Origin: Macrostomum lignano
Taxonomy: Eukaryota
DNA: 64,000 bases
Direction: 5' to 3'
NCBI GenBank assembly: GCA_002269645.1
Contig: NIVC01001013.1
Span: 1 to 64,000 of the forward strand
The translations under genes were made by a program, and so were the position numbers. Positions 15,640 through 64,000 of this stretch are shown here, piece after piece. The notes under the pieces were generated by a model, which was not told the origin of the DNA, searched no databases, and saw nothing but the letters and a program-made list of their open reading frames with translations. How positions within the stretch are numbered: the stretch's first letter is position 1; the number at the start of each line of letters is the position of its first letter.

Positions 15640-16490
15640 CCATATCCCAATCACTCCTTGACCCATGCAGAAATCCCAACCATCTGTGACCCAATCCAGA
15701 TAATCTAACCATCTATGACCCAATCCAGATAATCTAACCATCTATGACCCAATCCAGATAATCTAACCATCTATGACCCAATCCAGATAATCTAACCATC
15801 TATGACCCATTCCAGCTATCCCAACCACTCCTTGACCAATGCAGAAATCCCAACCATCTATGACCCAATCCAGATAATCTAACCATCTATGACCCAATCC
15901 AGATAATCTAACCATCTATGACCCATTCCAGCTATCCCAACCACTCCTTGACCAATGCAGAAATCCCAACCATCTATGACCCAATCCAGATAATCTAACC
16001 ATCTATGACCCATTCCAGCTATCCCAACCACTCCTTGACCAATGCAGAAATCCCAACCATCTATGACCCAATCCAGATAATCTAACCATCTATGACCCAA
16101 TCCAGATAATCTAACCATCTATGACCCATGCAGAAATCCCAACCATCTATGACCCAATCCAGATAATCTAACCATCTATGACCCAATCCAGATAATCTAA
16201 CCATCTATGACCCATTCCAAATATCCCAACCATCTATGACCCATTCCAAATATCCCAACCATCTATGACCCATTCCAAATATCCCAACCATCTATGACCC
16301 ATTCCAGCTATCCCAACCATCTATGACCCATTCCAGCTATCCCAACCATCTATGACCCATTCCAGCTATCCCAACCATCTATGACCCATTCCAGCTATCC
16401 CAACCATCTATGACCCATTCCAGCTATCCCAACCATCTATGACCCATTCCAGCTATCCCAACCATTTTTGACCCATTTCGGATATCCCAA
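15640..16490. repeat. ~29-bp variant minisatellite
   Basis: Units GACCCAATCCAGATAATCTAACCATCTAT and GACCCATTCCAGCTATCCCAACCATCTAT, plus variants in interspersed blocks. Confidence 0.9.
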
Positions 16491-16617
16491 CTGCCCCGTG
16501 CCTAATCCCAGATATCCCATCTTATGAATTGCTCATTAGAATGGCAAGTACAGCTGATACAGGTATAGCCAAGGAAACCGTCATTATAGCCATTCACCTG
16601 CATGCTCTATAGGCATC

Positions 16618-27628: not shown

Positions 27629-28100
27629 GGAGAGCGCTGTCTATGGCAGCGGAGAATATGGAGAGTGATGTCTATGGCAGCGGAGAATATGGAGAGTGCT
27701 GTCTATGGCAGCGGAGAATATGGAGAGAGCTGTCTATGGCAGCGGAGAATATGGAGAGAGCTGTCTATGGCAGCGGAGAATATGGAGAGTGCTGTCTATG
27801 GCATCGGAGAATATGGAGAGTGCTGTCTATGGCATCGGAGAATATGGAGAGTGATGTCTATGGCAGCGGAGAATATGAAGGGTGATGTCTATGGCAGCGG
27901 AGAATATGAAGAGTGATGTCTATGGCAGCGGAGAATATGGAGAGTGATGTCTATGGCAGCGGAGAATATGGAGAGTGCTGTCTATGGCAGCGGAGAATAT
28001 GAAGGGTGATGTCTATGGCAGCGGAGAATATGAAGAGTGATGTCTATGGCAGCGGAGAATATGGAGAGTGATGTCTATGGCAGCGGAGAATATGGAGAGT
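27629..28100. repeat. 31-bp tandem repeat, ~15 copies
   Basis: Unit GGAGAGTGATGTCTATGGCAGCGGAGAATAT. Confidence 0.92.
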
Positions 28101-28591
28101 GAGTCGCTTCGATCGATTTAGTAGTAAATTTGAGCTTAGAAAAGTTCTGTCATGGATCGCATTCGATCTCTTAGGTTAAAGCTGGCTTAAATGTTGCTGC
28201 AGCTCGGAAATTATCCCTTGATTAGATCTCATGTAGGCACTCTACATGTGCAGTGAAATGGATTAAAAGGGATGGCACTAAGGATCAAATAAGTGTCAAA
28301 AGCTTTCAGGGCTGATTTTCGGCTTTTAGTCTGGATTAACTTAAAAAGTTAGAACTCCTGAATTTCTATTTGGGGCAGAGAAATCGGCTGGAAACGAAGA
28401 CATTGGTTCCGTGGTTCAGCTTTAAAAAAGTAACTCCCTTAAATCCAGTTCCCAGTCTGCATAGTCCAATACTTCTGCAGAGCTCAGAAAGCGTTTCTCA
28501 ATTGGCATTATCAATAATGGCTTCTGTTCAGCTTGCACTGCGCATCTTGTGTGCTTTTGCTGTCCGTGAGTAACTGAATTATTGGTGCTGT

Positions 28592-29828
<1,237 letters not shown>

Positions 29829-37182: not shown

Positions 37183-38325
37183 CTCCATTTCAGCATTCGA
37201 GGTGTGCCACGAAGCTCACAGATGTTCAATTGAAAAGATATTTTTGGTGTTAAGTCTACTCAGATGTTATATTGCAAAAATGTTTTTAGTTTAATTTTAA
37301 AAAGATTTTCCTTGCTGTAGTATGCATTTGATTTTTTTGTACAGTCACCATCTACGTCGTAAATTCTAAAGAAAATTCACTCCATTTCAGCATTCGAGGT
37401 GTGCCACGAAGCTCACAGATGTTCAATTGAAAAGATATTTTTGGTGTAAAGTCTACTCAGATGTTATATTGCAAAAATGCTTTTAGTTTAATTTTAAAAA
37501 GATTTTCCTTGCTGTAGTATGCATTTGATTTTTTTGTACAGTCACCATCTACGTCGTAAATTCTAAAGAAAATTCACTCCATTTCAGCATTCGAGGTGTG
37601 CCACGAAGCTCACAGATGTTCAATTGAAAAGATATTTTTGGTGTTAAGTCTACTCAGATGTTATATTGCAAAAATGCTTTTAGTTTAATTTTAAAAAGAT
37701 TTTCCTTGCTGTAGTATGCATTTGATTTTTTTGTACAGTCACCATCTACGTCGTAAATTCTAAAGAAAATTCACTCCATTTCAGCATTCGAGGTGTGCCA
37801 CGAAGCTCACAGATGTTCAATTGAAAAGATATTTTTGGTGTTAAGTCTACTCAGATGTTATATTGCAAAAATGCTTTTAGTTTAATTTTAAAAAGATTTT
37901 CCTTGCTGTAGTATGCATTTGATTTTTTTGTACAGTCACCATCTACGTCGTAAATTCTAAAGAAAATTCACTCCATTTCAGCATTCGAGGTGTGCCACGA
38001 AGCTCACAGATGTTCAATTGAAAAGATATTTTTGGTGTTAAGTCTACTCAGATGTTATATTGCAAAAATGCTTTTAGTTTAATTTTAAAAAGATTTTCCT
38101 TGCTGTAGTATGCATTTGATTTTTTTGTACAGTCACCATCTACGGCGTAAATTCTAAAGAAAATTCACTCCATTTCAGCATTCGAGGTGTGCCACGAAGC
38201 TCACAGATGTTCAATTGAAAAGATATTTTTTGTGTAAGGTCTACTCAGATGTTATATTGCAAAAATGCTATTAGTTTAATTTTAAAAAGATTTTCCTTAC
38301 TGTAGTATGCATTTGATTTTTTGTT
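37183..38325. repeat. 197-bp tandem repeat, ~5.8 nearly identical copies
   Basis: CTCCATTTCAGCATTCG at 37183, 37380, 37577, 37774, 37971 and 38168. Confidence 0.95.
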
Positions 38326-41280: not shown

Positions 41281-41481
41281 TGCGCCTAGATACCGTTTTC
41301 ATTGGGATATGATTGTTTAGCAATGAACCAATTAGTTATACTCAGAAATGAAGTTTAAAACGTACATGAATAATTAATCGCTTATAACTATCCTAGGCCT
41401 AAATGAAAGATGTTTGACTTGTAATGTCCCACCAAAAAATTGATTAATTTCAAATTTATCAATTGCTGCAACCGTGGCCAA

Positions 41482-44400
41482 ATGTCGGCCTCTCAAATGC
41501 GCCAGCTGCCAGCTGCCACAGCTCGCATGCTCAGCAGCGGCCAGGTGATCCTCGGTCCCGAGTCCGTAGTCAAGGAGTTGATTGAGAACGCTCTGGACGC
41601 CGGGGCCACCAGAGTGGACGTCCGGCTAGACAGCTGCGGCCTGGATCGCCTCGAAGTGCTGGACAATGGCCGCGGCTTCTCCGCCAGCGATGCCGACTTG
41701 GTTGCTATGCGGCACTGCACATCCAAGCTGGCTGACGATTCCGGGCTAGCCGACCTGGTCACCTACGGATTCCGGGGCGAGGCGCTCAACTCGCTGTGCA
41801 CAGTTGGCCAGCTGAGCATGGCTACTCGGTGCCAGGGCGAGGAGCTCGGCAGGGAGTACGCATTCGATAAGTCTGGCCAGGTTGTGTCCCGGCGGGACGT
41901 TGCCATGCCAACCGGCACCCGGGTCACCGTCCGTCAGCTGTTCCACTGTCTGCCAGTTCGGCGCCAGCAGCTGCGCTCGGCTAAACGGCTGAGAGAAGCC
42001 CTGGCTAGCGTGGAAGCCGCCATTCGATCAGCCGCTCTGGCTAATCCTGGCGTACGTTTTGCGTTGCTTAGCGACGGCGAAGCGTTGCTAAGCCTGCCAG
42101 AGTGCGCCAGTCTGAATGATCGCGTCAGGCAGGTGCTCAGCTATGCCGTGTGGCAGCAGATGCAGCGGCTTGACTGTCAGATTAACAATGCAGTGGGCGG
42201 TCGGGTCGTTGCGTTTGTGCCAGCCAGCGGTGCTGACAAGGCTATGCTGTTTCGGAATGGAGATCTGCATAGCTTCTTCATTGGTGAGTAAAATATTGAT
42301 CATTTCAGTGTTAAACAGCTTGTGACCCGTTTTGAGACCTTGATGATCCCTTTTCAGACCCTGATGACCCCTTTTCAGACCTTGATGACCCCTTTTCAGA
42401 CTTTAATGACCCCTTTTAAGACCCTGATGACCCCTTTTCAGACCTTGATGACCCCTTTTCAGACCCTGATGACCCCTTTTCAGACCCTGATGACCCCTTT
42501 TCAGACCCTGATGACCCCTTTTCAGACTTTAATGACCCCTTTTAAGACCCTGATGACCCCTTTTCAGACCTTGATGACCCCTTTTCAGACCCTGATGACC
42601 CCTTTTCAGACCTTGATGACCCCTTTTCAGACCTTGATGACCCCTTTTCAGACCTTGATGGCCCATTTTAAGACCTAATGAACCCTTTTGAGACCTTAAT
42701 GACCCCTTTTCAGACCTTGATGACCCCTTTTCAGACCCTGATGACCCCTTTTCAGACCTTGATGACCCCTTTTCAGACCTTGATGACCCATTTTAAGACC
42801 TTAATGAACCCTTTTGAGACCTTAATGAGCCCTTTTTAGACCTTAAAGACCCCTTTGGAGACCTTAATGAGCCCTTTTCAGACCTTAATGAGCCCTTTTC
42901 AGACCTTGATGACCCCTTTTCAGACCTTGATGACCCCTTTTCTTCAGGCCTTGATGATCCCTTTTCGGACCTTGATGACCCATTTTTAGACCTTCATGAC
43001 CCCTTTTGAGACCTTAATGACCCACTTTCGCAATTTGCAGTATGGATCACTCAAGTAAATCCCCTTAATGACCCCATTTTTCGACCTACCAGTCTTATTC
43101 ACTTGAGTAACCTTGAGTCGCAAGATTAGCACAAGCCAATCTAGACACTTAAGCCTCTATCAATCAATGCACCTAGCTAGCATAACTGAAGATATTAAAC
43201 AAATTAATTTGCAGTCAACAGACGCCCAGTACAGTCAGCTAAGCTCGTGAAAATGATTCGTTCTACAATCTCCTCTGCATTCGGCGTGCCAACCAAGCTG
43301 CCCGTGTGCGTTCTGTCAATTGAACTGCCAGCAGATGCTCTCGATGTGAACTTGAACGCAGCCAAGACTCAAATAGGCCTAGCTAATGAAGCCGCTGTGC
43401 TAGAATCTATTAGAACTATGCTATTGGATACTGTGCCAAATCAATCGTTAGCTACCGTGTCGAATACTGTTGCTACTACTGCAGACATAGTAGTTGCTAA
43501 TAATAATAATGCTCCTGATTCAATTGTTAGTAATGCCAACAACAAGGATGTCAGAGCTGATGCTGCTGGTGCAGCTGCTGAGAGCCACTTGCCGACATCT
43601 CCGGTGGCTCCATCTGCGGAATCGCCTGATCAAACTGAGCAGCAGCAGCATCAACAGCAGCAACAGCAGCAGCAGCAGCAGCATCAGCAACAACAGCAAC
43701 AGCAGCAGCAGCCTCAGCAACAACAGCAGCAACAGCAACAGCATCAACAGCAGCAGCATCAACAGCAGCAGCAGCAGCAACAACAGCAGCATCAGCAGCA
43801 ACAACAACAGCAGCATCAGCAACAGCATCAACAGCAGCAGCATCAACAGCAGCAGAATCAGCAGCATCAGCAACAACAGCAGCAGCAGCAGCCGATGCCG
43901 TCTGCAGTTGATATTTTTGACCCAACTGCTGTTGCGATGCAAGGAGGCGGCGGCGGGGCAGACCTGATGCAGCAGCTTATCGACCTAACCGCGATAGACG
44001 ACAACAGCAGAGAAGACAGTTCAGTGGCAGATCATCTGGCCGAGTCCCCGGTGCCAAGACGCCGACTCCAACCGGATTTGGAAGCTGCTCCACTCGGCGA
44101 CAAGCCGCGATCGGCGAAGCGGCCGAGACCCGAGCCGGCTGATCAAGCGAGTGACGTCGCAGCTCCGCCGCCAGCGATGCCGACCTACTCGGATCTGGCC
44201 TCGATTCACAGGCGACGCTGCCGACTGCCAGCTCGGTGCAGTGCAGACCGGCTCAGCCAGCTGTTTGAGTCGCTGCAAGCAGCTGATGCATTTTGCTACA
44301 GCATTAGTGCCATTTACCCATCCGCAGTTCGGTATGTTGGCCAGCTGGCTGACTACGGCTTCGTGATTGGCGTTGACTCAACTGGGGCGCTGTACGCTTT

Positions 44401-44518
44401 TAGAGCTGCCTCATCAACTGATGCTGGACAGGCTGATAATGCAGCTGTTTATACTCGTATGCAAGAACAGATTAACAATGGTAAAGGGAAACTCTTGGCT
44501 AGGCTAGCTAGTGAGTGA
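41482..44518 (+). CDS. PMS1: MutL homolog of PMS1 type; exons 41482-42283 and 43215-44518; ~701 aa with a polyQ linker
   Basis: MRQLPAATARMLSSGQVI matches the PMS1 N-terminus; KELIENALDAGA, DNGRG, TYGFRGEAL (GHKL ATPase). A phase-1 intron joins FFI-V/NRRPV. Confidence 0.85.
42322..43080. repeat. 21-bp minisatellite filling the PMS1 intron
   Basis: Unit TTTTCAGACCTTGATGACCCC. Confidence 0.92.
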
Positions 44519-46582: not shown

Positions 46583-46999
46583 TGCTCGGCCAGTGTTTGA
46601 ATAATTTCCAGCTCAGTCTAAAGCAAATAACTGCAGTCAAATTTTCTTTTTTTATATACAACGAAATCCAACATCCGGCATTCTAGCTCAATTGGAAATC
46701 GGTTGCATCAAAATAGTCAACATCCTGCTGTTTAGATCTGTATCTATCTAGATCTAGATCTATATGTTTAGATCATGTATCACTGGGATTGGCTAGTCCG
46801 GAAACATTTTGAGGGCGCAATTTTTGGCTAATTTTCATAACTAGCTCGTATGCATTGAACTTACTTATTTAACCTACGAGTGGCAAATTAACGCTTTAAC
46901 CTACACTTTAAATTTTAAAAGGCCACTTAGCCACTAAGCTCAGATAATTTTGAGTTTTATTACAGTTATAAAATCCACGACAAGAAGGGGTGGCAGACC

Positions 47000-47605
47000 A
47001 TTAATGACTGGAAGGGGTTGGCAGACCAATGACCGGAGGGGGTGGCAGATCACCAATGACTGGAGGGGGTGGGAGATCACCAATGACTGGAGGGGGTGGC
47101 AGATCACAAATGACTGGAGGGGTGGCAGACCAATGACCGGAGGGGTGGCAGATCACAAATGACTGGAGAGGTGGCAGACCAATGACTGGAGGGGTGGCAG
47201 ATCACAAATGACTGGAGAGGGTGGCAGATCACAAATGACCGGAGGGGTGGCAGACCAATTACTGGAGAGGATGGCAGATCACAAATGACTGGAGGGGGTG
47301 GCAGATCACAAATGACTGGAGGGGTGGCAGACCAATGACCGGAGGGGTGGCAGATCACAAGTGACTGGAGAGGTGGCAGACCAATGACTGGAGGGGTGGC
47401 AGATCACAAATGACTGGAGAGGGTGGCAGATCACAAATGACCGGAGGGGTGGCAGACCAATTACTGGAGAGGATGGCAGATCACAAATGACTGGAGGGGG
47501 TGGCAGATCACCAATGACTGGAGGGGTGGCAGATCACCAATAACCGGAGGGGTGGCAGATCACCAATGACTGGAGGGGTGGCAGACCAATAACCGGAAGG
47601 GTGGC
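47000..47605. repeat. 24-28-bp variant minisatellite
   Basis: Core AATGACTGGAGGGGTGGCAGA(TCA)CC. Confidence 0.9.
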
Positions 47606-48447
47606 AGTCGCAGACCACCAGCGAGCAGGATGAGATCAAACAGTCCAAAAAATGAACACACCAAACAATCAGATTTGATAGAAATTTATGTCTCAGAATA
47701 GAGGTGAAAAACGCACCTTGCCTTTCAAAACCGGATGTTAAATAACCAACTTAATATTATAGCTGTCAGGCAAGGGATAATTCAAGAGACTTATATTTTA
47801 AAAGGAGCTTACTTCCAAAATTTTGTTAAGTTGAGAAACAGTAAGAAAAAAAACAAAAAACTGAGAAACTGTAGCGGTACAAACGGACAATTCTCTCTCA
47901 CATAACCAGCCAGATTGCAACCATCAGTCGATTAACAAGCAGTTAAATTAACAAAACACACAACGGTTTCCCATATGATTATAACAATAAAAACACTAAT
48001 AATAATAATAATACGCTCGTAGTAATCTAAATATTAAATAACACCCAAGTCAAACTACTATTGCTAAAGGGTATTAACTTTTGAAGGATGCTATAAATAG
48101 ATTTATTATAATAATATTAATTTCTCTTTGCGAACAAATTCATGCATAGTGTATTATCATTCAAATTTTAATTGTTTAAACTCAGCTGATTCAATACTAG
48201 TAAACGCGCGGAATTAAACTTTTTACTAATATTATTAATAACAGTTTGGGATTGAGTCGACGCAAATGACAGCGACAATAAAAATATTACTTGTAGTAGT
48301 ACTGCATGTTCAAGCAAGAGGTCGGGTTAATAAATTCAGCCAATAACAAAATTTGAAAAATTGTCTGACTCCCCAAAAAACGTTCGATTTTCTCCATCAT
48401 CTTAAGCCGTTGAAGACGCCTTGCCCCTAATCGATTCTTTCCCGCCT

Positions 48448-51400
48448 TCAAGACATGGCCTTCACAGTCTTGTACTTGCGTCTCGGATCCATGGCTGCAG
48501 CGAGAATACGAGAATACAAATGATTAACTATTGTCAACTCAACAAAAAATTGAGCACCTCTTAGATTATAGCAATTCTTTGTTTCACTCACCAGGAAAGC
48601 TGACGTAGGGCCAACCTGAAAAAGGGGAAAAAACTAAAGTTAAACACACTGCATTACTTTGAACGCACACACAGTATGTACAGCGGCCCTTTGACTTTAT
48701 ATTCGTCAGGCATGTACACTCCGTGTATTGGTGGGTTGGCCCTCACCCTAACCAGGAGGGGGGGTCGCAGCGCGAGAGAGACTATTTTCTCTTCCGGTCT
48801 TGTAGCCAAGTGGTTAGAGCGTCGGGGGTTCGATTCCTGACCCACTCAGAACAATTTTGTGTCATTCAGCAAGACATTTAACTCTGCATTGCTTCAGTTC
48901 ACCCAGCTGTAAAATGGGCACCAGCATTAGCTGGGGTAATTGAGGGTGTGTGTGGCGACAACCCAGTCCTTGGACTGAGCAACCTTCAGATGCGTCGCGC
49001 AATGGCTGCGGCTGAGCAGTCGGTTGCACATCTGCCATTAGTGCAGGTGTAATAAATTATGATGACTATTATTTCTTCCGGCGAATTTTTCCTTCAGACT
49101 CACCCGGTGCAACGTTGCCGTAACCGCCGGCACCAATAGGTGGATAATTCGGATACTGCGGGGGCGGCGGCATCTCCAATTGATGGCACTGGCGAAGCTT
49201 CTCAGCTATGAAAGCCTCGGCTTGGCACATGCCGTCCAGGGAGCCGCGCACAGTGATGATGCGGTCCATGCTGAAGCTCTTGCCCATCGAGTCGAATGAG
49301 GTGATGGTCGGCGAGCTGGAATGGTGGGGTTGGTAAGGACTTTATCTTGACTACTGCAGCAGCCCAGACTGTAGTACCAGATGCCTATTGCAGCACCCCA
49401 GACTGTAGTACCAGATGCCTATTGCAGCACCCCAGACTGTAGTACCAGATGCCTACTGCAGCAGCCCAGACTGTAGTACCAGATGCCTACTGCAGCACCC
49501 CAGACTGTAGTACCAGATGCCTACTGCAGCACCCCAGACTGTAGTACCAGATGCCTACTGCAGCAGCCCAGACTGTAGTACCAGATGCCTACTGCAGCAG
49601 CCCAGACTGTAGTACCAGATGCCTATTGCAGCAGCCCAGACTGTAGTACCAGATGCCTACTGCAGCAGCCCAGACTGTAGTACCAGATGCCTACTGCAGC
49701 AGCCCAGACTGTAGTACCAGATGCCTACTGCAGCAGCCCAGACTGTAGTACCAGATGCCTACTGCAGCAGCCCAGACTGTAGTACCAGATGCCTACTGCA
49801 GCAGCCCAGACTGTAGTACCAGATGCCTACTGCAGCACCCCAGACTGTAGTACCAGATGCCTACTGCAGCAGCCCAGACTGTAGTACCAGATGCCTACTG
49901 CAGCACCCCAGACTGTAGTACCAGATGCCTACTGCAGCAGCCCAGACTGTAGTACCAGATGCCTACTGCAGCACCCCAGACTGTAGTACCAGATGCCTAC
50001 TGCAGCAGCCCAGACTGTACCACAAGACACGAGAAGGAAGCAAACTCACTTAGACAGCTGAATACTGGTCTTGGTTTTCTCGCGAATCGTGTTCAGATTT
50101 TTGCCATCCTTCCCGATAATTCTGCCGCAGAATCGGTCTTCAGCCAGAATGTTGAGTTCGGCATCTCTGACAGGTTGGGCAAATGTGGTTTAGAATTGCC
50201 CTTTAAAGCAGTCCAAAAGTAAGACAAAAACTCAAAGAAATAAATTGGTCTATAGATCTTACTCCTTGGTTTTCTCCTTGGCCTCATTAACGCAGATGGT
50301 GAGAATCTCCTTACAGGCGGCGGAGCAGGCCTCAGGCGTGCCAGAAATGAATACGATCTGGACAATGCGTACATTATTATTCAAATGCTGCGCTTTCAGT
50401 TGGATAAAATAAAGTAAAAGGCACGAAACAGACTACTGGCTAGTAGGATAAATACGATGTCAACTTAAAGCACCGAAACGGAGTAGAAGCTGCGGACATT
50501 AAATCCCATTTTATCCCCTGGATGAGACGTCTTAACGTTTCCGATATTCGTAGTCGGCTCAGAGCAACTCAGTGATGAAAGAAACTGACTCTCGCGCCAA
50601 GACTCCTTGGTTCGATTCGGTGAGCGGCCGACGACATTCATTTGGGGCTTGTGTGCACGAAAGACTGGCCGGGGGTTGCCATGCGATTCACAACGATGAC
50701 GGCCAAACCATACATGCGCAACCCCCCTGATTTACACTGGCCATGCGACTTACCTGTGAAACTCAAGAGCAACATTAACGCAATTTTGGGTAAACGGCAG
50801 GAGTAACTATGACAGTCTTATAAGGGCTAAATGCCTCGTCATCTAATTAGTACTACGTCTGTATTCTTAGGGGTGGGTATTTTTGCGACTTACCCCTGGT
50901 CCACCACAATTTACGGTGGCCAGATCGGCCAGGTCGGCCAGCAGTTGCGCATGTATGGGCCAAACCCCAAGGCACAGAGAGTGCACATGCCTGACGATTA
51001 GATAGTCAGGGCCGCTGTACACCCTGTGTGAGCGTGTGCATGAGTGCGTGCCTGCGTACAGTGTTGGCGAGCTTGTACGTGCTTGTATGGGCAGAATCGC
51101 TTCAGGGCTGACCATAGGACCATGTCGCCGAAGGCGTTTCGCCAGGGTGCCTGCAGCACTACTGTTATTTTCTGAAAGTTTTGCACTACGATCTGGCTCC
51201 ATTCTGGTGCAATTTACTGACTCTTGATGCTTTCCTGCATCAAAATGCATCCTGGATGTTTTTATGACATCTGCAAACCACATAAAAAACCCAAGTACCA
51301 AGGAAGCGGGCTTTACCTGACTATTTTGCACCTTTCTAGGCGGAATATTTTTAGTAACAACCTCGCGTTTAACGTCAATCCTGGCCTTGGAACGGTTAGT

Positions 51401-51892: not shown

Positions 51893-53595
51893 GCCTGCTA
51901 TCCTAGCTGCCCCTACTATACCTGTAATAGTTAGGCATTGATATGATTATTGTATGGCATGCCTGCTATCCTAGCTGCCCCTACTATACCTGTAATAGTT
52001 AGGCATTGATATGGCTCATTCCATATAAGATGAACATTTTTGGAAAATAGAAAAAAGTCAATATTTTTGCTTGCCATTGCCTTATCAGCCAATTTTTTTA
52101 CCAAATGTTTTTTATGTGTAATATCTACAATCTAAGAATAAATGAATGATAAAATGTTAGATTAGTATGCTATCAAGTGGCAAAAAGTCATTTTTGTAAA
52201 AATTTAGACATTTTTCTAAGCAAAAGACATCATTAAGTTTGTGTACCTTTTAAAAACAAATAGAAAGCTTTGGAAGGTTGAAACAAACTATAGATAAAAG
52301 TATAGTACTTGCATCATCAGATAAAAGTATTGGTGACCAAATAATCTATTATATTTTTAATATATTGGTACCTCAAAGTTACTGAATTGACAGAAAAAAA
52401 TATGTTACGACCATAATGTTACGACCATAAGGCTGCCTTTTCTTTTGTATCTTTGTTGCCTTTTTGAGTTTATATATTCTACAAAAAGAGTATGATTACT
52501 AAAGATGTTCTTAGTCAAATTTTAAAAAATGTATTGCAAAATATCAAAAATAAAAATGTTATAAGACTTTTACCTTTTAGTTTCTATATGTCAAAAATCC
52601 TGTTGTTACGACCATAAGTGCCATTCAAGGTTTAATAGCATCTATACTAATGATGATATCTACATGAAACTCTATAAAAATATTTTTGACAAAATTATCT
52701 TTCATTTAAAATATTGGTTTAGTATATTCTATTATTATATTTCATTTTATAAGTAAAAATAGCCTGTCATGTTACGACCATGCTTATATGGAATGAGCCA
52801 TATGGTCACTGCATGGCATGCCTGCTATCCTAGCTGCCCCTACTATACCTGTAATAGTTAGGCATTGATATGGTCACTGCATGGCATGCCTGCTATCCTA
52901 GCTGCCCCCACTATACCTGTAATAGTTAGGCATTGATATGATTATTGTATGACATGCCTGCTATCCTAGCTGCCCCTACTATACCTGTAATAGTTAGGCA
53001 TTGATATGGTCACTGCATGGCATGCCTGCTATCCTAGCTGCCCCCACTATACCTGTAATAGTTAGGCATTGATATGATTTTTGCATGGCATGCCTGCTAT
53101 CCTAGCTGCCCCTACTATACCTGTAATAGTTAGGCATTAATATGGTCACTGCATGGCATGCCTGCTATCCTAGCTGCCCCTACTATACCTGTAATAGTTA
53201 GGCATTGATATGGTCACTGCATGGCATGCCTGCTATCCTAGCTGCCCCCACTATACCTGTAATAGTTAGGCATTGATATGATTATTGTATGGCATGCCTG
53301 CTATCCTAGCTGCCCCTACTATACCTGTAATAGTTAGGCATTGATATGGTCACTGCATGGCATGCCTGCTATCCTAGCTGCCCCTACTATACCTATAATA
53401 GTTAGGCATTGATATGATTATTGTATGGCATGCCTGCTATCCTAGCTGCCCCTACTATACCTGTAATAGTTAGGCATTGATATGGTCACTGCATGGCATG
53501 CCTGCTATCCTAGCTGCCCCCACTATACCTGTAATAGTTAGGCATTGATATGATTTTTGCATGGCATGCCTGCTATCATAGCTGCCCCTACTATA
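51886..53595. repeat. 68-bp tandem array (~14 units) beginning at the IMP-like start codon
   Basis: Unit GGCATGCCTGCTATCCTAGCTGCCCCTACTATACCTGTAATAGTTAGGCATTGATATG(ATTATTGTAT/GTCACTGCAT). Confidence 0.93.
52013..52799. mobile_element. Kolobok-like non-autonomous DNA transposon, copy 2
   Basis: Same 17-bp TIR as 6891-7674; 4-bp TSD ATAT duplicated from the satellite unit. Confidence 0.82.
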
Positions 53596-54643: not shown

Positions 54644-55944
54644 CAAGGGGCACTAGATAAGTTTTTAGCTGCGGTCAAACTCTATTCAAATAAGGCCATA
54701 TTTTCTAAGCATATTGAATAAGAAGTTTTATCATGATCCCCAAAGTTTCATGCATTTAATTGTCACCATTCTCTCACTGTTGCATTTTATCGCAACAATG
54801 TCTGTGACTCTTTCAGCACTGTAATGGAGTTCAATTGTGAACACTTTTGTGCCATGATTTTCTACAATTTTAATAGCAGCTTGACATTTCACCAGTGCCA
54901 CAAGTGGCTGTCTGCTGCCTTTCCTAACCTTGCGCCATCCATCACTACTGTCACTGCCTGGTTCTGGGAGTTCAAGCATGGCCGAGACAGCTTGAAAGAC
55001 AAAGATCGAACCAGCCGACCTGTTTCAGTGACGACACCTGAAACTATCGACCACATGCAGCGCATGATTGAGGCTGATCAGCAAGTGACATATCAAACAA
55101 TTGAGGCATGTCTTGGCATCTCATTGCTGACAGTCGCTTCTATCCTTTGTGATCACCTTGCTGTCCACAAGCTGACCAGTCGCTGAGTGCCACATTAGCT
55201 CACTGCTGAGCAAAAGCAGGCCTGCATGAGCTAGTGCCAGAAAATGCTGGACAGGTTTGGCGGAGGGATGTCGAAGTCTGTCACAGACATTGTCACATGT
55301 GACAAAACGTGGGTATATTGCTACGAACCTGAGCCGAAATGCCAAACGCGTGTGTGGGCTTTTGAAGATGACGCCCTGCCGACCAAGGTTGTCAGAGGTT
55401 AGAGCACTGGCAAGCAAATGGTGGCAACTTTCTTCCAAAAGACTGGCCACATTTATGACTGTAGCACTCGAGAGCCAGTGCAGTGACTGCAGATTGGTAC
55501 TATACCATCTGCATGCCGCGTGTCATCAGCAGCCTTGAAGAGGCATGGCCAAAGTTTGGTGTTCAAGGTCTCTGGCTGCACCAGGACAATGCCAGTGTAC
55601 ACACAGCAAATTGAACTCAAGAGTTTCTACAGATGGTGGGCTTCCAACAGCTTAGTAACCCACCATATTCATCTGACCTGGCACCGTGTGACTTTTTTTG
55701 TTTCCATTCATCAAGAATTCCATGCGAGGGGGCCAATTTTCCTCTGCCAAAGAGGCTGTTGATGCCTATAGATTGGCCATTGAGGGGGTATCCCACTCAG
55801 AGTGGCGCCACTGCTTTGAAACTTGGTTTGAGCGGATGAGGCAGTGCATCCAAGCTGATGGAGAGTACTTTGAAAAGCTCTGAAAGTTTATCTTTATAAC
55901 TGTTACATGCTAACCGCAGCTAGAAACTTATCTAGTGCCCCTCA
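54644..55944 (+). mobile_element. Full-length (1301 bp) inactive mariner element
   Basis: ~32-bp TIRs and TA TSD. Decayed transposase from 54824: R*VPH*L (WVPHxL), CDKTW, HQDNA, HPPYSSDLAPCDFF, GEYFEKL; stops and frameshifts. Confidence 0.93.
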
Positions 55945-57290: not shown

Positions 57291-58387
57291 TAGGCCTAGG
57301 CCTACATTAAATTATTCTTATAGTTTAATCTAAATGAAAGCTAGCAGGTCTATCATATTGACTATGTATATACACACTCATAGGAGTCACACAGAATTAG
57401 ACCACTCCACTGACTCCAGGCACTTAAAGATTTCTATTCATTATCTTTAGTCTTTACTCTTTAGATGTATATTACCTATTACGCAATAGTAAATTGTAAT
57501 GCACTGCAGTATCTAGTTAAAAAATTCAATTAGGCCTAATCTTAAGCCTATCTAGGCCTAATCTAATTAAAATCTACTTCAGGCCGGCCATGGCCATTCC
57601 ACGCCACCTTTCAGGCAGGGGGCTGCTGCCGACTGAATTTATTTGGGCTCTCTGTGATGTGCCAGGGGCGGAGAAAAGAAAAGGGATTCGCAAGTAAGTA
57701 AGTATGGCTCAGTCAAGAAGCCTGTTTGGCCAATATATTTCAGTGTAATTTAAGAATAATTCAAGATTAGAAGGCAATATTTATGCATGAGTTATTCAAG
57801 TCCGATACGAGTTTTGCAATATAGTATTTGAAAGAGCGCGTAAATGTTATAAACGAAACTTTGAACGAGCTTTAACGACTAACGAAGTAATAAAAGTAAG
57901 GAATTAAAAAAAGACAAGTATTGCGTGAAATTTGTGTAAATGTTTGGCGATTATTGTAAAAAATATGTTATATGAAAGCCTAGGCAAAATATGGCAAAGG
58001 TATCGGCCTTTGAACTTTGAACTGCCGCCTTCGTTATCTCGGCACGAGTAAAGCCGGAAAGTTGCACGGACTAGTTTGAATCGATTTTTTCTCATTGATA
58101 CTCCGTCTGCCGGGGTCCTCAATTCCGGGGGGAGGGTAGTCGTTGTCGTAGGCGAGCTGTCTTTAACAGGGCGCGGTCGTTCAAACGGTAGACACTGATA
58201 CGCTTGACATGCTGCCATCACCGCAAAGAAATACACTCTGCTCCGAAGGCAAGACCACTTCGAGTGGAAGTGCTTGGAGTGCACTGTGCCATGTGCACCC
58301 CGTGCAGCACCGCGTGCAGCTGCTGCTGCTGCCGACATTGCTGCTGCTGCAGCTCCTGTGCTGTGTGCACCCCGTGCAGCACCCCGT

Positions 58388-61300
58388 TGTTGTTGTCGCT
58401 GAGGCGCGAACATCCCATGCGTTCCTTTTCCACCCCGTGCGGTACCAGGCCCAGTACCTTAGCGCCTCCTCCGGGTGCTCGTTAATGAGGCGCAGCTCAG
58501 TGGGCCCGCCCATCCTGCGTCGGATTTCCGTGGCCGGGCAGTGGCAGCTGACGTGCTCAACCGTTTCCTCCTCAGTCCCGCACGCTGGGCACATCGCGTC
58601 GGTGGTCCTGCCTATTCTGCGGCAGTAGGCCCCCAGCTCCAGCGAGTGGCCCGTGCGGAACCGAGTGAAGCTGACCGCCTCCGCCCTGTCCTTGTAGGCT
58701 GGGTGCCTGGCTGTGCCGAGGTCGCCGTAGGTGCTCTTCGTTCTACCGTGCGTCCAGTGCCTGCTGTTGTAGCTTGCGGCCCTCGTCTCCGCTGCCAGAC
58801 GTCTGCGGATCACACTCGCCAGCACACCGGCTTCCTTCTGCGGCAGCTCCGTCGCGCCTCCGGCAACTTTGTCTGCGACCTCGTTACCCTCCAACCCGCA
58901 GTATGGGCCGGCGTCCAGCATAGCGCTATCTCGCGTCCGGTCTGGCAGGTCTTGTACAGCAGCTTGCGGATCTTTATCGCGATTGGATTGCGACCTCGGC
59001 CCTGGACCGCGAGGAGCCCACTCTTGCTGTCTGACGCGATCAGCGCTGTGCTCCATGTCGGCTGCTTGCATAGCCAGGCCACCGCGAGCTCCAGGGCGGT
59101 AAGCTCGGCTTACAGCGAGGAGGCCGGCTGCCCGGCTGCCCTCCGGAGGTTGGTCTGAACGCCGAATTGTTCTCCTAGCTGTTAGGCGTCCCTTCCGGTA
59201 GATGACCACTCCGCTGCCACCGCCCTCCTTCTGTACCGACCCGTCCGTGTAGATGATGATGTCGGGGTCGTGGCTGGCCTGCTTGATCCTCGTTTGGGCC
59301 ATCTCGAGATTGCCGTCGCGTGTCTCTTGCCTTGCATCATCGGTTGAGACGAGGAAGGTGATGTTGTCCCTCCAGCTCTGCCAAGGGGGGAGGTCCGTCG
59401 CGTCCTCGAGCCTCGCCACCTCGTCTAGGCCGGCGTTGGCGAGACCTCTGCTGGCCTGAACTCTCCAGCCTTGCCTCTTCAGCCTTTGCCTGGTCTGCTG
59501 GCTGCCAAGGCGGTATCTTGGCGAACTGGTCTCAAGCCTGAGCCACCGGTCCAGCTTTGTGTTCCAGATCACTTCACATTGGTTCCGGATCGAGAGTAGC
59601 CCGCTCTCGCAGCGTAGGGCCTCAACAGGGGTGGTAGCGACCGCTCCGGTGATGATGCGCTGCACGCTACGCTGCACTACTTCGAGCTTACGCCAGGCCG
59701 CGCTAGTAAGCCACGGCGTCCAGGCACAGGCCCCGTAGAGCAGTTTGCTGCGGATGAGGGCGATATAGGTGTTGCGGATGAGCTCGGCTTGCCAGCCCCA
59801 GGAGCTGCCCGCGAGGCGCCGCAGCAGGTTGAGGCGGTTCCGGCAGTTGCGGATCACGTTGTCCGCGTGCGCTGTGAACCTCAGCTGTCTATCAAACGTA
59901 AGCCCGAGGAATGTAGGCTGCTCGATCCATTGCATTGGCTGTCCTTGTAGCACCACGTTCGGGGCCGCCGCCCTCTGCGGGGTCATCGCCGGGTCGCTGG
60001 AGAAGAGGGTGAGCGAGCACTTCTCCGTGGCAACCGGTAGCAGCCATGCTTCACTCCAAGCTTGCAGGACGTCGACCGCCGCCTGCTGGGTGGACGAGGC
60101 CTCCGCGGCTCTTCTGCTGCTGGTCCAGGTGGCCAGATCATCCGCATAGCCGCTAACCTGCAGGTCCGGGATTGAGTCTAGTTCCCTGAGGAGGTCGTCG
60201 ATGAAGACGATGAATAGCAGCGGCGACAGCACAGAGCCCTGCGGTAGCCCTTGCTGGAAAAGTTCCCGCTTGCTGTCGACGTCTCCAACCCGGACACACG
60301 CCAGCCTGTTCGCTAGCCAGCCCTGTATCCATCTGACCGTTTTGGGGCCAATGCCCGCGTTGAGTAGCTTGATCAGCAGCCCGTCTCGCCAGACCTTGTC
60401 AAAGGCGCGCGCAAAGTCGAACAGCGCCAGGACCGTCAGTTTCCGCTTTTGGAATGCGTCGTCGATCGATTGGGACAGGCGGAGCAGTTGGTCTTCCGTG
60501 GACCTGCCTCCTCTGAACCCCGCTTGTGCTTCGCTGAGGCCGCCGGAGGACTCAAGAACATGCTTGATGCGGTTCGCAAGCACCCGTTCCATCCACTTGC
60601 CGAGGCTGGATGTCAGGCTGACCGGCCGGTATGATCCTATGTCCTTGGCGGGTTTCCCGCTCTTAAGCAGCGGTATGATGCGGGCCGTGCGCCAGTTTTG
60701 TGGAGCGAAGCCGCCGTCATATAACCGGTTAAACAGCCTTAGGACCTCATGTAGCGCCTCCCGGGGGAGCGCCTTCAGCAGCTTCGGGTGGAGGCCGTCC
60801 ATGCCGGCGGCTCTGTTGGCGTCCATACTCTGCAGCGCAGCTTGCAGCTCGTCCAGGGTCAGGGCTTGGCAGTCCGCAGCATTGGGGGAAGTGGCGCTTT
60901 GCCGCAGGCGGGCGTTAATTTCTCTGCGTGCCCATCTGTGCCTGGCCCGGACGGTGTTGGCGCTGACCTTGGCGTACACTTTCGCAATGATGTTCGCCTT
61001 GGCTCTGTACCTTCTTCCTTCGTGCTCTAGGATCTGGTCTCTGCTGGCGTCGCCGCGCCGTTGAGCTGTTTCAGCAGTGACCATATCTTGTCCGCCGTTG
61101 CACTGTTGTCCAACTTGTCTCTCCATCGTTCCCTCCTGCTCTCCTGCTGCTTCCTCCTGATCTGTTGGTCCAGGTGCTTCCATTCATCCGACTCGATACC
61201 CTCTCTTTCCCTGAGGTTATCTCTTTCCGCCATCAGGTGCTGGACTTCCTCGTCGACGAACACCGCGTTTCTGGTCTTCCTGGCCACCATGCCCACCGCC

Positions 61301-63129
61301 TTGCGGGCCGCCTTCACAAGGCACCTTCGCAGCTGCTCTTCATGCTCCGAGTTGCTGAGAATCTGGAGGTTCGAGTTCCTGAGATGTTCCCTGACCAGAT
61401 GTTGGTACAGCGGCCAGTCCGCCTTCTTCCAGTTCCAGCACATGTTCTTCCTAGTGCTGGGGTCCGGGTCCGAGTTCGCTTCCCTGCGGCTGATGATGAT
61501 CGGCAGGTGGTCGGAGCTCAACCTGTTCGCCGTCCGCCATTCCCACTGGTCTAGCTCCGCCTGTGGGACTATGGTCACGTCCGGCGAAGACCTGTGCTCC
61601 CCGTCACGGCTGGTTCGCGTGGTGGATCCATCATTAAGCGCCGCCAGCAGCTGGTCGTCCATCCAGTCGACGAGCTCTTCGCCTCGTCTGTCCCTGGGGG
61701 AGCTGTTGTCCCACAGCTCGTGGTGCGCATTCCAGTCGCCGGCCAGGAGCAGGTTCTCGCCGCTTGGGATCTGCAGCAGCTCAGTGGCTGTCATGCTGCA
61801 GGTCGCTTGAGGCGGTATGTAAATGTTGATCAGCAGTAGTTGTTCCAGGCCCTGTCTGTTGTTGACGGCGCAGGGCTGGCAGATCCAGCTAGCTCCGTCA
61901 GCTGGTCTCCAGCGAGGGATTGTCGTACAGGCGCGGTGGAAGACGCTGGCACACTGCGTGCACGGGATGCCGTTATGGCCTGCCCTGATCTTGCGGTCGC
62001 ATTTGCCGCAGTAGCTCGACCTGCTTGGCGAAACAACTTGGTCGGGCGTCGGGGTTCCGCCGGGTTTTTAGTTTTTGGGTTGGGTGGCGGATTCTCCCGG
62101 CTGTCCTCGACTTCAGTGAGTCTCCTCTCCGCAGGCGAGGTGATAGTGCTGGCTCGCTCCTCGCTGAGGCTCTCGAGTTCACTCCTGCCCGCCTCCGTGC
62201 CCTTCTCAGATCTCGGTATTTCGATGCTGCCTTCCGCAGCTCCTGCCGTCTGGCTTTCCTTCCTGTCCAAGGCGGCTGTGGCCAGCTCGACTGCCTGGCG
62301 TAGCCTTGCAGACGCCGCCTTGCTGCACCCGGCTTCCCTGCTGAAGGGTCTGATGCTGTCCTTCCTGATCCAGGACACCTGCCCGGTGCCAAACCAGCTG
62401 ACCGGCACGTCGTTGCTGCCATGCGCAGTGCAGCTGAGCGCGGCTTGCGCGTCTTCCGCTTGCAGGCGCTCGGCCGGCCACCAAGCCCAGCCCCTGAGTT
62501 TGGCCCAGATGATGTTGTTCCCTGGCCACGGTTCTATCTCTTGGTCGTTCGTTCTCATGATCGTTCGTTCATTCGTTCGTTCGTTCGTTCTCCTGGTCGC
62601 CATGGGTCTCGGTTGGCTTGCACGGCGTGCCGCTCGTCGCTCTTTGCTCGCCTCGTCGCTTGCCGCTGGTGGGCCTCGGCGCCCCTTGCTCCTTGCCAGG
62701 GGTGCTGGCGGTTGGCCGGCTGCCTTGGCAGCACGGACCTGTCCAGTCGCCAGCCTTTTCCAGCGCGTAGAACCTTCCTCTAGTCAGGCCGCTGCACTTA
62801 AGGTGAAGGTGGTTTTCGCAGTCCTTGCAGCGAGGGCTCGTTTGCTGCAGAGTCCGCAGAGGGAGCTTTGAGTGTTGGCTGGTCCCGAGTTGCTCTCGAC
62901 GTCGCCTGCTCTGAGCAGCAGGGTCCTGCTGTCGGCTCTGTAGGGCCTGTAGGCGCTGCCTCTCACTGTGCCGGTGCCGGTGCCCGTACTACGGTGGTGC
63001 GACCTCGGTCTCCTCCGATGGTGAATGTTCCTTTCTTGGATGTTCGGCTTCAGTATGCTTCCTTTCGTACCTAGACATCCTCGGCTAGGTTCCCCAGCAC
63101 ACCGCTTGGCGGTCTGGAAGCTGTGCTGG
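58388..63129 (-). mobile_element. Ingi/I-group non-LTR retrotransposon, inactive: 2A-like, PHD, PWWP, PHD, partial APE, RT, RNase H, CxxC..H motif, (ACA)n tail
   Basis: GDVESNSGP; WAKLRGWAWWPA; CGKC..CTQCASVFHRAC..WICQPC; GDWNAH, SDH; YRPVSLTS, QAGFR, PQGSVLSP, YADD; YTDGS, AEL, NEVAD; CPACG..ETVEH. At least 6 frameshifts. Confidence 0.92.
63047..63129 (-). ncRNA. Predicted HDV-like self-cleaving ribozyme at the LINE 5' end
   Basis: P1 CCAGCAC/GTGCTGG, P2 GCTTC(C)AG/CTGAAGC, P3 ACC/GGT, L3 GCCAAGC whose CC can pair with the GG after P1 (P1.1), P4 CCTAG/CTAGG, J4/2 C. Confidence 0.72.
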
Positions 63130-64000
63130 TGCTGCTGCTGCTGAAGAGGCGGACGACATTTTTGCTGAGGTGAGTGTCAGTATCAGAGTGTCAGAGTGTC
63201 AGTATGGGTGATACGAGTGACACGACACATGAGTCACTTTCCATCGTGCCATCTGCAGACGATTGATGGCACAATCTTTCCCATCGCTGAAAGCAAAGCG
63301 CTGCAGGAGCCGGAGGTTGAGCCAGAGTTCACAATAGACGAACCATGACTCTACACGCTTTAATGTCGAGTGTGTTGTCAAAGGAGCCAGAGACATTTGA
63401 CATTGTGGCACAAGGCTCCCAAAAAGGGAGGATGAAGGTTGTGTCCTCCTATAGCAACACCTTCGTAAAGAAGTCGGCACGTGGAGCGAGAACCTACTGG
63501 CGGTGCAGCGTGCGCAACACAACGACAAGGTGCCCGGCCAGCGTCATTCAAACTGCCGACGGATTCAAGCGCGGTGACGCCGAACACAATCACTACCCTG
63601 TACGCCAAACGCTGCAAAATGTGCAGCTCCGTGCAGCACTGCGTGCAGCAGGCAGAAACGAGCTGTTTCGACCAGCTGCTGAAATAGTCGATCACGTCAG
63701 CATAAGTAAACTATTTCCGACCCACCTACTCATTTTACTCACTGACTCACTCACTCCCGAGCAGTGGCATCTGCTCAAGCAGGAGGTTGCGGACATTTGA
63801 AATTAGGACATCAACCTAATTTAACTGATTTTACAAATTTTAATTTTACTTTGTGGCGCACATTCGTTTAAATATGTACATTTGTTCGCATACTTATTCG
63901 AAATTGTCCTCTGCGTTTCTTATCAAGTTGAATTTCGAATCCGATCTGCAATTTCTTACGAAGTCTAAACATTGGACTGTAAGCAAGTACCTAATAACTC

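Follow-up and report, generated by a model that had tools for sequence, protein, structure and literature searches.

A PWWP domain within the PHD finger array of a dead LINE copy from Macrostomum lignano

Did a long interspersed element (LINE) of Macrostomum lignano carry a chromatin reader of its own, or does the reader found in one of its copies belong to that copy only? The question is raised by a stretch of 64,000 nucleotides (contig NIVC01001013.1, positions 1 to 64,000, assembly GCA_002269645.1; hereafter the window), whose minus strand holds, from about 63170 to 58000, one copy of a LINE with a single open reading frame (ORF), an APE-type endonuclease and an RNase H, as recognized by translation, Pfam and tblastn with related proteins. 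A preliminary description of this DNA had read the locus as a retrotransposon polyprotein with a PHD-PWWP-PHD cassette ahead of APE, reverse transcriptase (RT) and RNase H. A non-LTR (long terminal repeat) element reading PHD, PWWP and PHD on one strand is indeed present, but it is dead and not an intact polyprotein. The combination of PWWP and PHD in a LINE appears to be new in the open literature, as had been suspected: searches of open-access papers and bioRxiv, with Repbase and Dfam lying outside them, turned up no non-LTR element, and no retrotransposon polyprotein of any kind, for which a PWWP had been described. The 2A-PHD-APE architecture around it was already known.

The features of the N-terminal part, on which the question turns, are as follows:

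62880-62921, minus strand: 2A/StopGo-like peptide LLLRAGDVESNSGP, aligned to the MLLLRAGDVESNPGP start of the related protein P0001
62728-62858, minus strand: degenerate PHD finger (PHD1), from homology to P0001 (tblastn frames -3 then -2)
62058-62682, minus strand: insertion of about 625 nucleotides (linker 1, PWWP, linker 2) relative to relatives with the order 2A-PHD1-PHD2-PHD3
62561-62590, minus strand: (GAAC)n microsatellite, period 4 and 7.5 copies in Tandem Repeats Finder (TRF)
62253-62516, minus strand: PWWP domain with the motif AWWP (Pfam, PDB sequence matches, AlphaFold, Foldseek)
62035-62070, minus strand: third frameshift, from frame -3 to -2, within a series of short homopolymers (last frame -2 stop at about 62073; alignment of the related protein P0002 starts at 62034)
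61870-62010, minus strand: PHD finger of C4HC3 type (PHD2; Pfam PHD, 23.0 bits; homology to P0002)
61809-61855, minus strand: junction of an internal deletion (tblastn of P0002, P0004 and P0001; partial Exo_endo_phos profile)

The PWWP is a genuine domain, far beyond chance. It matches Pfam PF00855 with E=1.1e-13, scores 52 bits where the gathering score is 25.6, and covers profile positions 2-92 of 93, in agreement with the claim that it is complete. Searched by phmmer against PDB sequences, it matches NSD2 (4.4e-9), DNMT3B (1.1e-7) and the second PWWP of NSD3 (5e-7), followed by PWWP2B, DNMT3A, ZMYND11, LEDGF, HDGF and MSH6. An AlphaFold model from the single sequence was discarded (predicted local distance difference test, pLDDT, of 48) and a model based on a 24-sequence alignment was used instead, with a pLDDT of 89.2 and a predicted template modelling score (pTM) of 0.79. 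It presents strands E11-15, E21-26, E45-50, E56-60 and E64-66 and a C-terminal helix at 79-97. Among the Foldseek matches listed from the PDB, the top ones are all PWWP domains (probability 1.00, template modelling (TM) scores of 0.50-0.74), the HRP3 PWWP-DNA complex and the LEDGF PWWP being among the matches.

The positions of the aromatic cage are occupied by tryptophans in GW, WWP and SWFG. In the sequence alignment this W/W/W set coincides with F236, W239 and W263 of DNMT3B, the residues of its H3K36me3 cage; the position of DNMT3B D266 is Thr, like in LEDGF, and the WP pair is invariant in the alignment of PWWP sequences (A1). Apparently, the domain is cage-competent. PWWP domains with such a cage read H3K36me2/3, and some of them H4K20me or H3K79me, and they also contact nucleosomal DNA, while PHD fingers read the N-terminus of H3.

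Both fingers around the PWWP are homologous to those of LINE proteins. PHD2 keeps 8 of 8 C4HC3 ligands, is 75% identical to amino acids 7-66 of P0002 by tblastn, and its Pfam score is slightly below the cut-off of 24. PHD1, for which Pfam gave no match, is recognized together with the 2A-like peptide by 45% identity over 85 amino acids to the first PHD region of P0001 (E=6e-16); it is broken by a frameshift at 62837-62829, lacks about 4 codons and has its 7th zinc ligand changed from Cys to Gly, and it retains 7 of 8 ligands, with WTGPCC versus W-x-C-x2-C in relatives. The 2A-like peptide ahead of it (62921-62880) had been overlooked. It reads GDVESNSGP, the critical NPGP being changed to NSGP (Pro-to-Ser), where relatives have the canonical D[VI]ExNPGP; this canonical motif is found near the N-terminus in 15 of 128 related LINE proteins, and the leader that precedes the motif in relatives measures 0-80 amino acids. 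On the other side of PHD2, a deletion at about 61855/61809 took PHD3 and the N-terminal half of APE (about 233 amino acids, corresponding to P0002 amino acids 67-299).

Read along the minus strand, the order is leader, 2A-like peptide, PHD1, a basic linker with (GAAC)n, PWWP, an acidic Ser-rich linker and PHD2. Relative to its kin, the PWWP with its linkers, roughly 55-65 amino acids each, is an insertion: P0001 and P0004 run gap-free from PHD1 (to 62683 and 62731) into PHD2 (from 62010 and 62058). It begins directly after the conserved linker motif TPGK(E/D)(Q/E)G, which is TPGKEQG in the window copy and TPGKDEG in P0001, lies on the element's own strand and stays open for 257 codons without a stop. 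Three frameshifts had been reported here, at about 62830, at the GAAC array near 62575 and at about 62065, and three-frame translation, TRF and tblastn showed that all of them are real. The first one goes from frame -3 to -2 between 62837 and 62829, within PHD1. The second one, from -2 back to -3, can be bounded only to 62683-62571; the PHD1 frame ends at a TGA (62571-62569) inside the (GAAC)n array, which is the likely site of this change, and the slip of one 4-nucleotide unit would restore the frame. The edges of the insert were searched for direct repeats, a target-site duplication and poly(A), and none was found, only the microsatellite and short chance pairs.

The composition of the insert resembles that of the element. 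At third codon positions, the A/T counts are 15/5 in the PWWP and 35/14 in the whole insert (measured on 62064-62603), compared with 273/149 in the rest of the element and 586/729 in 12 host ORFs of the window. The likelihood ratio of element over host is 28 for the PWWP and 837 for the whole insert, and among 271 host-ORF windows none reaches both values of the PWWP. This element-like A-over-T bias, together with the lack of a target-site duplication or poly(A) boundary, makes it more likely that the insert resided for long in a LINE lineage than that it was freshly captured from a host gene. The composition argues against such a capture, which is less than a proof of a PWWP-bearing master element.

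The ORF that contains the RT retrieved 178 LINE-type proteins at E<=1e-30. The closest, with 74% identity, is A0A1I8IFP6 of M. lignano (P0002), and none of the others, which are mostly metagenomic, exceeds 49%. P0002 begins exactly at PHD2, followed by PHD3, full APE, RT and RNase H. The intact proteins P0001, P0004, P0009, P0011 and others have M...GDVE(x)NPGP at their start, then 3-5 PHD fingers and, after these, APE, RT and RNase H. With respect to the PWWP itself, phmmer, run exhaustively against 1.84 billion representative proteins, gave 77 relatives, the best at 68.6 bits and with identities of 22-46%, and two of the top matches are spurious bacterial repeat proteins. No candidate for a host-gene donor was found: the top matches are scattered (beetle N-PAC, plants, chytrid, haptophyte and the NSD family), all at or below 46%. 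As the best identity is 46% and the top matches belong to unrelated taxa, nothing points to a known gene from which the domain was recently captured. A metagenome scan with the PWWP alone returned no relative. A word-indexed protein search with the 364-amino-acid N-terminus returned only P0001, which is without PWWP; this search is lossy and its negative results carry little weight, as it missed P0002 despite the 75% identical PHD2, and missed it also for a query that was almost entirely the P0002 N-terminus.

The rest of the element comprises these features:

62952-63170, minus strand: GC-rich 5' leader, where the switch to GC 0.58-0.63 and to A-over-T skew starts (three-frame translation)
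61489-61830, minus strand: C-terminal half of the APE endonuclease (PF14529, E=6.2e-21; PF03372, E=2.2e-5)
59897-60646, minus strand: reverse transcriptase with intact YADD box (PF00078, E=1.7e-36)
58860-59270, minus strand: RNase H, from ungapped tblastn with the P0002 RNase H segment (only a weak Pfam match in the long ORF)
58529-58624, minus strand: C-terminal CCHC-type zinc knuckle, zf-RVT-like (PF13966, E=0.0076)

After PHD2, the order on the minus strand is C-terminal APE half, RT, broken RNase H and CCHC zinc knuckle, and the whole block has a GC content of 0.58-0.65 and a strong A-over-T skew on the sense strand, with AT-rich flanks. The RT is of the non-LTR type, as its PF00078 match and its LINE-type relatives indicate. 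The APE upstream of it is incomplete, covering only positions 128-204 of 225 of the Exo_endo_phos profile. Since its N-terminal half is deleted, the window copy cannot be autonomous, and the ancestor clearly had a full APE. The series APE-RT-RNase H that had been placed after the cassette is therefore true of the ancestor and not of the window copy: RT and the C-terminal half of APE are there, but PHD3 and the N-terminal half of APE are deleted and the RNase H core is out of frame. It passes from frame -1 to -2 at about 59173, is restored at about 58903 and contains one nonsense codon. A further frameshift at about 61057 (frames -2 then -1 by tblastn) parts the RT frame from that of APE, and the only upstream ATG, at 63162, does not share the frame of the 2A peptide. 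The copy is dead, with at least 7 frameshifts (one of them, in the 5' leader, deduced indirectly), a large internal deletion and a nonsense codon; this verdict takes together the NSGP form of the 2A, the out-of-frame ATG, the broken PHD1, the two shifts that flank the PWWP, the deletion of about 233 amino acids, the shift at about 61057 and the lesions of RNase H.

Homology to relatives stops at about 58436 (the alignment of P0004 reaches 58439), and the 3' untranslated region extends to about 58000, where GC falls. Past this homology there is on the minus strand a (GCA)n tract at 58295-58363, flanked by a 12-nucleotide repeat (GCACCCCGTGCA), and beyond the point where the LINE ORF naturally ends, about 85 further codons are free of stops. 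Besides the element itself, no second copy was found in the 64-kb window by blastn of the DNA or tblastn of the protein. Scans of the window for Rfam families and tRNAs gave no match.

How, then, did the PWWP come to stand in this copy? Starting from what is observed (which domains are present and in what order, the lesions, the insert that relatives lack and a composition like that of the element), the explanation that we favour is that the PWWP was acquired by a LINE lineage and most likely stood in frame in the presumed progenitor of the window copy, rather than having been pasted from a host gene into this single copy. The three frameshifts that surround it would have arisen afterwards, as the copy decayed, at a tetranucleotide microsatellite and in homopolymer runs. 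The long residence of the PWWP in the lineage we consider slightly more probable than the opposite, and the explanation as a whole, that is, with an in-frame origin, later decay and a role in chromatin tethering, stands in our judgment at about an even chance. The domain may be a trait of the family or a one-off.

The best surviving competitor is precisely the latter: a chimera in which the PWWP entered this copy only, by template switching during reverse transcription or by later recombination or insertion, and was never part of a working protein. We regard it as a possibility of some weight, although we would not expect it to be the right answer. Several points speak for it or weigh against the reading that we favour. 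The PWWP was seen in a single LINE copy, a dead one, and is unique to this locus among everything retrieved. A local hidden Markov model (HMM) built from alignment A1 found it in none of the 128 related LINE proteins at E<=10, although the same model recovered 72 of the 77 PWWP proteins as a positive control; the N-terminus of these LINE proteins is at most 46% identical to that of the window copy. The closest relative, P0002, is cut off at PHD2 and is therefore uninformative on the PWWP either way. Neither RT nor APE is present in any of the 77 PWWP relatives, none of which matches a LINE protein, nor within 10 kb of any of 80 metagenomic PWWP loci, which were found with a 6-sequence alignment. 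The frame of the PWWP block differs from both flanks, which are in frame with each other, and this arrangement also fits an out-of-frame foreign insert with a length that is a multiple of three. Other gross rearrangements have affected this copy, including the 233-amino-acid deletion just past PHD2. With respect to composition, the host side of the comparison consists of the 12 ORFs from the window only, and the linkers of the insert are of low complexity and rich in A-rich codons.

On the other hand, a chimera does not account well for the rest of the evidence. The insert has the A-over-T bias of the element and not that of host genes (likelihood ratios of 28-837), its edges are free of the marks that an insertion might leave, and no donor gene appeared among the representative proteins searched. 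The frame changes on either side of the PWWP lie at a microsatellite and at homopolymers, sites at which simple slippage is to be expected, and they count in favour of an integral domain; one extra GAAC unit would account for the first of these two shifts. Furthermore, a compensating pair of frameshifts is also present within the RNase H, which is certainly ancestral, and such pairs are thus normal decay in this copy. It should be noted that, if the chimera had been formed with the RNA of another LINE, a PWWP-bearing LINE would still exist.

If the PWWP was indeed an in-frame part of the lineage, the following mechanism can be proposed. Ribosome skipping at the 2A of an intact element would free the short leader and leave a main protein that starts with PHD1-PWWP-PHD2-PHD3, with the enzymes after them. 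The PWWP cage and the PHD fingers may bind methylated or unmethylated histone H3 tails and nucleosomal DNA, so that the protein-RNA complex would be tethered to a chromatin state, typically H3K36me2/3 for a PWWP of this kind, and the tether could bias where APE nicks and where target-primed reverse transcription starts. Chromatin-guided integration would be a plausible outcome. A function in targeting or in evasion of silencing, as suggested in the preliminary description, is something that we purely infer. We propose only tentatively, and would not count on it, an active LINE lineage, in a flatworm genome of macrostomid type, with its own PWWP in the PHD array, which would dock reverse transcription on chromatin, most likely on H3K36me nucleosomes.

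A second competitor, which we consider unlikely, also takes the PWWP as integral to an active lineage and assigns it a role other than the choice of site, such as retention in the nucleus or on chromatin, protection from silencing through residence in chromatin that bears H3K36me, or binding of nucleic acid in place of the missing ORF1 protein. These elements lack an ORF1, and they have reader-type domains at places where functions like those of ORF1 may be required (PMC3708506). In addition, PWWP domains also bind DNA, as in the HRP3 complex mentioned above. By analogy, however, chromovirus chromodomains and the PWWP of LEDGF, both Royal-family readers, act in site selection, and this part played by Royal-family readers linked to transposable elements or viruses is established knowledge.

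The last competitor, a host chromatin gene with PHD-PWWP-PHD order, a domesticated LINE fragment beside the LINE or an assembly artefact, is close to refuted: NSD2/3 and ZMYND8/11 do combine PHD and PWWP and NSD2 is the best PDB sequence match, but PHD1 is preceded by a LINE-type 2A leader, PHD2 is 75% identical to a LINE protein, the frame changes are 1-nucleotide shifts and not introns, the reading frame is broken by frameshifts and a stop, and the composition is continuous over 63170-58000.

Regarding the surroundings of the element in the window, an ORF with a FLYWCH zinc finger (63345-63800, plus strand, E=6e-9) lies directly beside the LINE's 5' end, on the other strand, and could be a host gene or another mobile element. 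At 54824-55883 on the plus strand there is what remains of a mariner/Mos1-type transposase (HTH_48, E=8.5e-7), distributed over several frames. Between 9591 and 53595 minisatellites are unusually dense, with periods of 21-202 bp, up to 34 copies and, in several cases, 92-99% identity; examples are found at 15644-16491, 27629-28102, 37183-38322, 42319-43028, 46986-47607, 49351-50019 and 52800-53595. The 21-bp array at 42319-43028 sits between two ORFs of a MutL/PMS1-like gene. The MutL/PMS1-like N-terminal ORF at 41440-42291 is followed downstream by an ORF at 43247-44518 (plus strand) with a very long interrupted polyglutamine (CAG/CAA) tract, which may belong to the same gene. A (TATC)n microsatellite of 1.2 kb at 28593-29828, with about 309 units and 97% matches, gives artefactual long ORFs and an extreme GC skew.

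The interest of the locus lies in what it would mean for LINEs in general, whose choice of insertion site beyond the short sequence preference of the endonuclease is poorly understood. To our knowledge, LTR elements, with their chromodomains, are the only ones for which chromatin readers encoded by the element itself are well documented, and the PHD fingers of LINEs are without an assigned function. If our explanation is right, this would be the first non-LTR retrotransposon with a self-encoded PWWP, a LINE counterpart of the chromodomains of chromoviruses and of the LEDGF-HIV pair, and a directly testable case of target-primed reverse transcription guided by a chromatin mark. LINEs would then have converged on the reading of H3K36me, like the retroviruses that use LEDGF. 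As a natural and small module, PHD-PWWP-PHD could serve to steer insertion based on retrotransposons. If the copy is a one-off chimera, it would merely represent domain shuffling in a dead element.

Among known systems, the closest in layout are the single-ORF LINEs with a 2A peptide and PHD fingers between 2A and APE described by Odon et al. 2013 (PMC3708506), for example Crack-17_BF, CR1-x_BF and STR-x_SP, together with Ingi-clade elements that carry a 2A. The statement in the preliminary description that PHD fingers are known in some APE LINEs is thus correct, and their position ahead of APE is a known feature of such elements. Like them, the window copy has a 2A-like peptide near the N-terminus, no visible ORF1, and PHD between 2A and APE, followed by RT; the metagenomic P0001, P0004, P0009 and P0011 match that layout exactly, with 3-5 PHD fingers plus an RNase H. 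Unlike them, the window copy has a PWWP, in the linker between PHD1 and PHD2; none of them is reported to carry this domain, nor was any found here to do so. P0002 resembles the window copy at 73-75% amino-acid identity over PHD2, the C-terminal half of APE, RT, RNase H and the zinc knuckle, and differs from it in keeping PHD3 and the full APE and in being fused to an unrelated host PIP5K-like tail. The association of a single ORF, a 2A, an RNase H and a C-terminal zinc knuckle may fit Ingi-like elements.

With the host proteins NSD2 and NSD3 (PHD array and second PWWP) and ZMYND8/11 (PHD-Bromo-PWWP) the element shares the combination of domains, and the second PWWP of NSD2/NSD3 is its best PDB match in sequence and fold. 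In contrast to these proteins, the identity is 20-33%, the PHD fingers are of the LINE type, there is no SET, Bromo or MYND domain, and the cassette is linked to RT, APE and RNase H. Like the chromoviruses (Ty3/gypsy elements with a chromodomain in the integrase), the element would encode by itself a methyl-lysine reader of the Royal superfamily, which in chromoviruses is thought to guide insertion. This likeness is functional only, without homology of context, since chromoviruses have LTRs, an integrase and a C-terminal chromodomain, whereas the window element belongs to those that use target-primed reverse transcription and has its PWWP at the N-terminus. Finally, the tethering of HIV-1 integrase by LEDGF/p75 also involves a PWWP, which there reads H3K36me3 nucleosomes and steers integration; the PWWP of LEDGF belongs to a host cofactor recruited by the virus, whereas that of the window copy is encoded in the element's own ORF.

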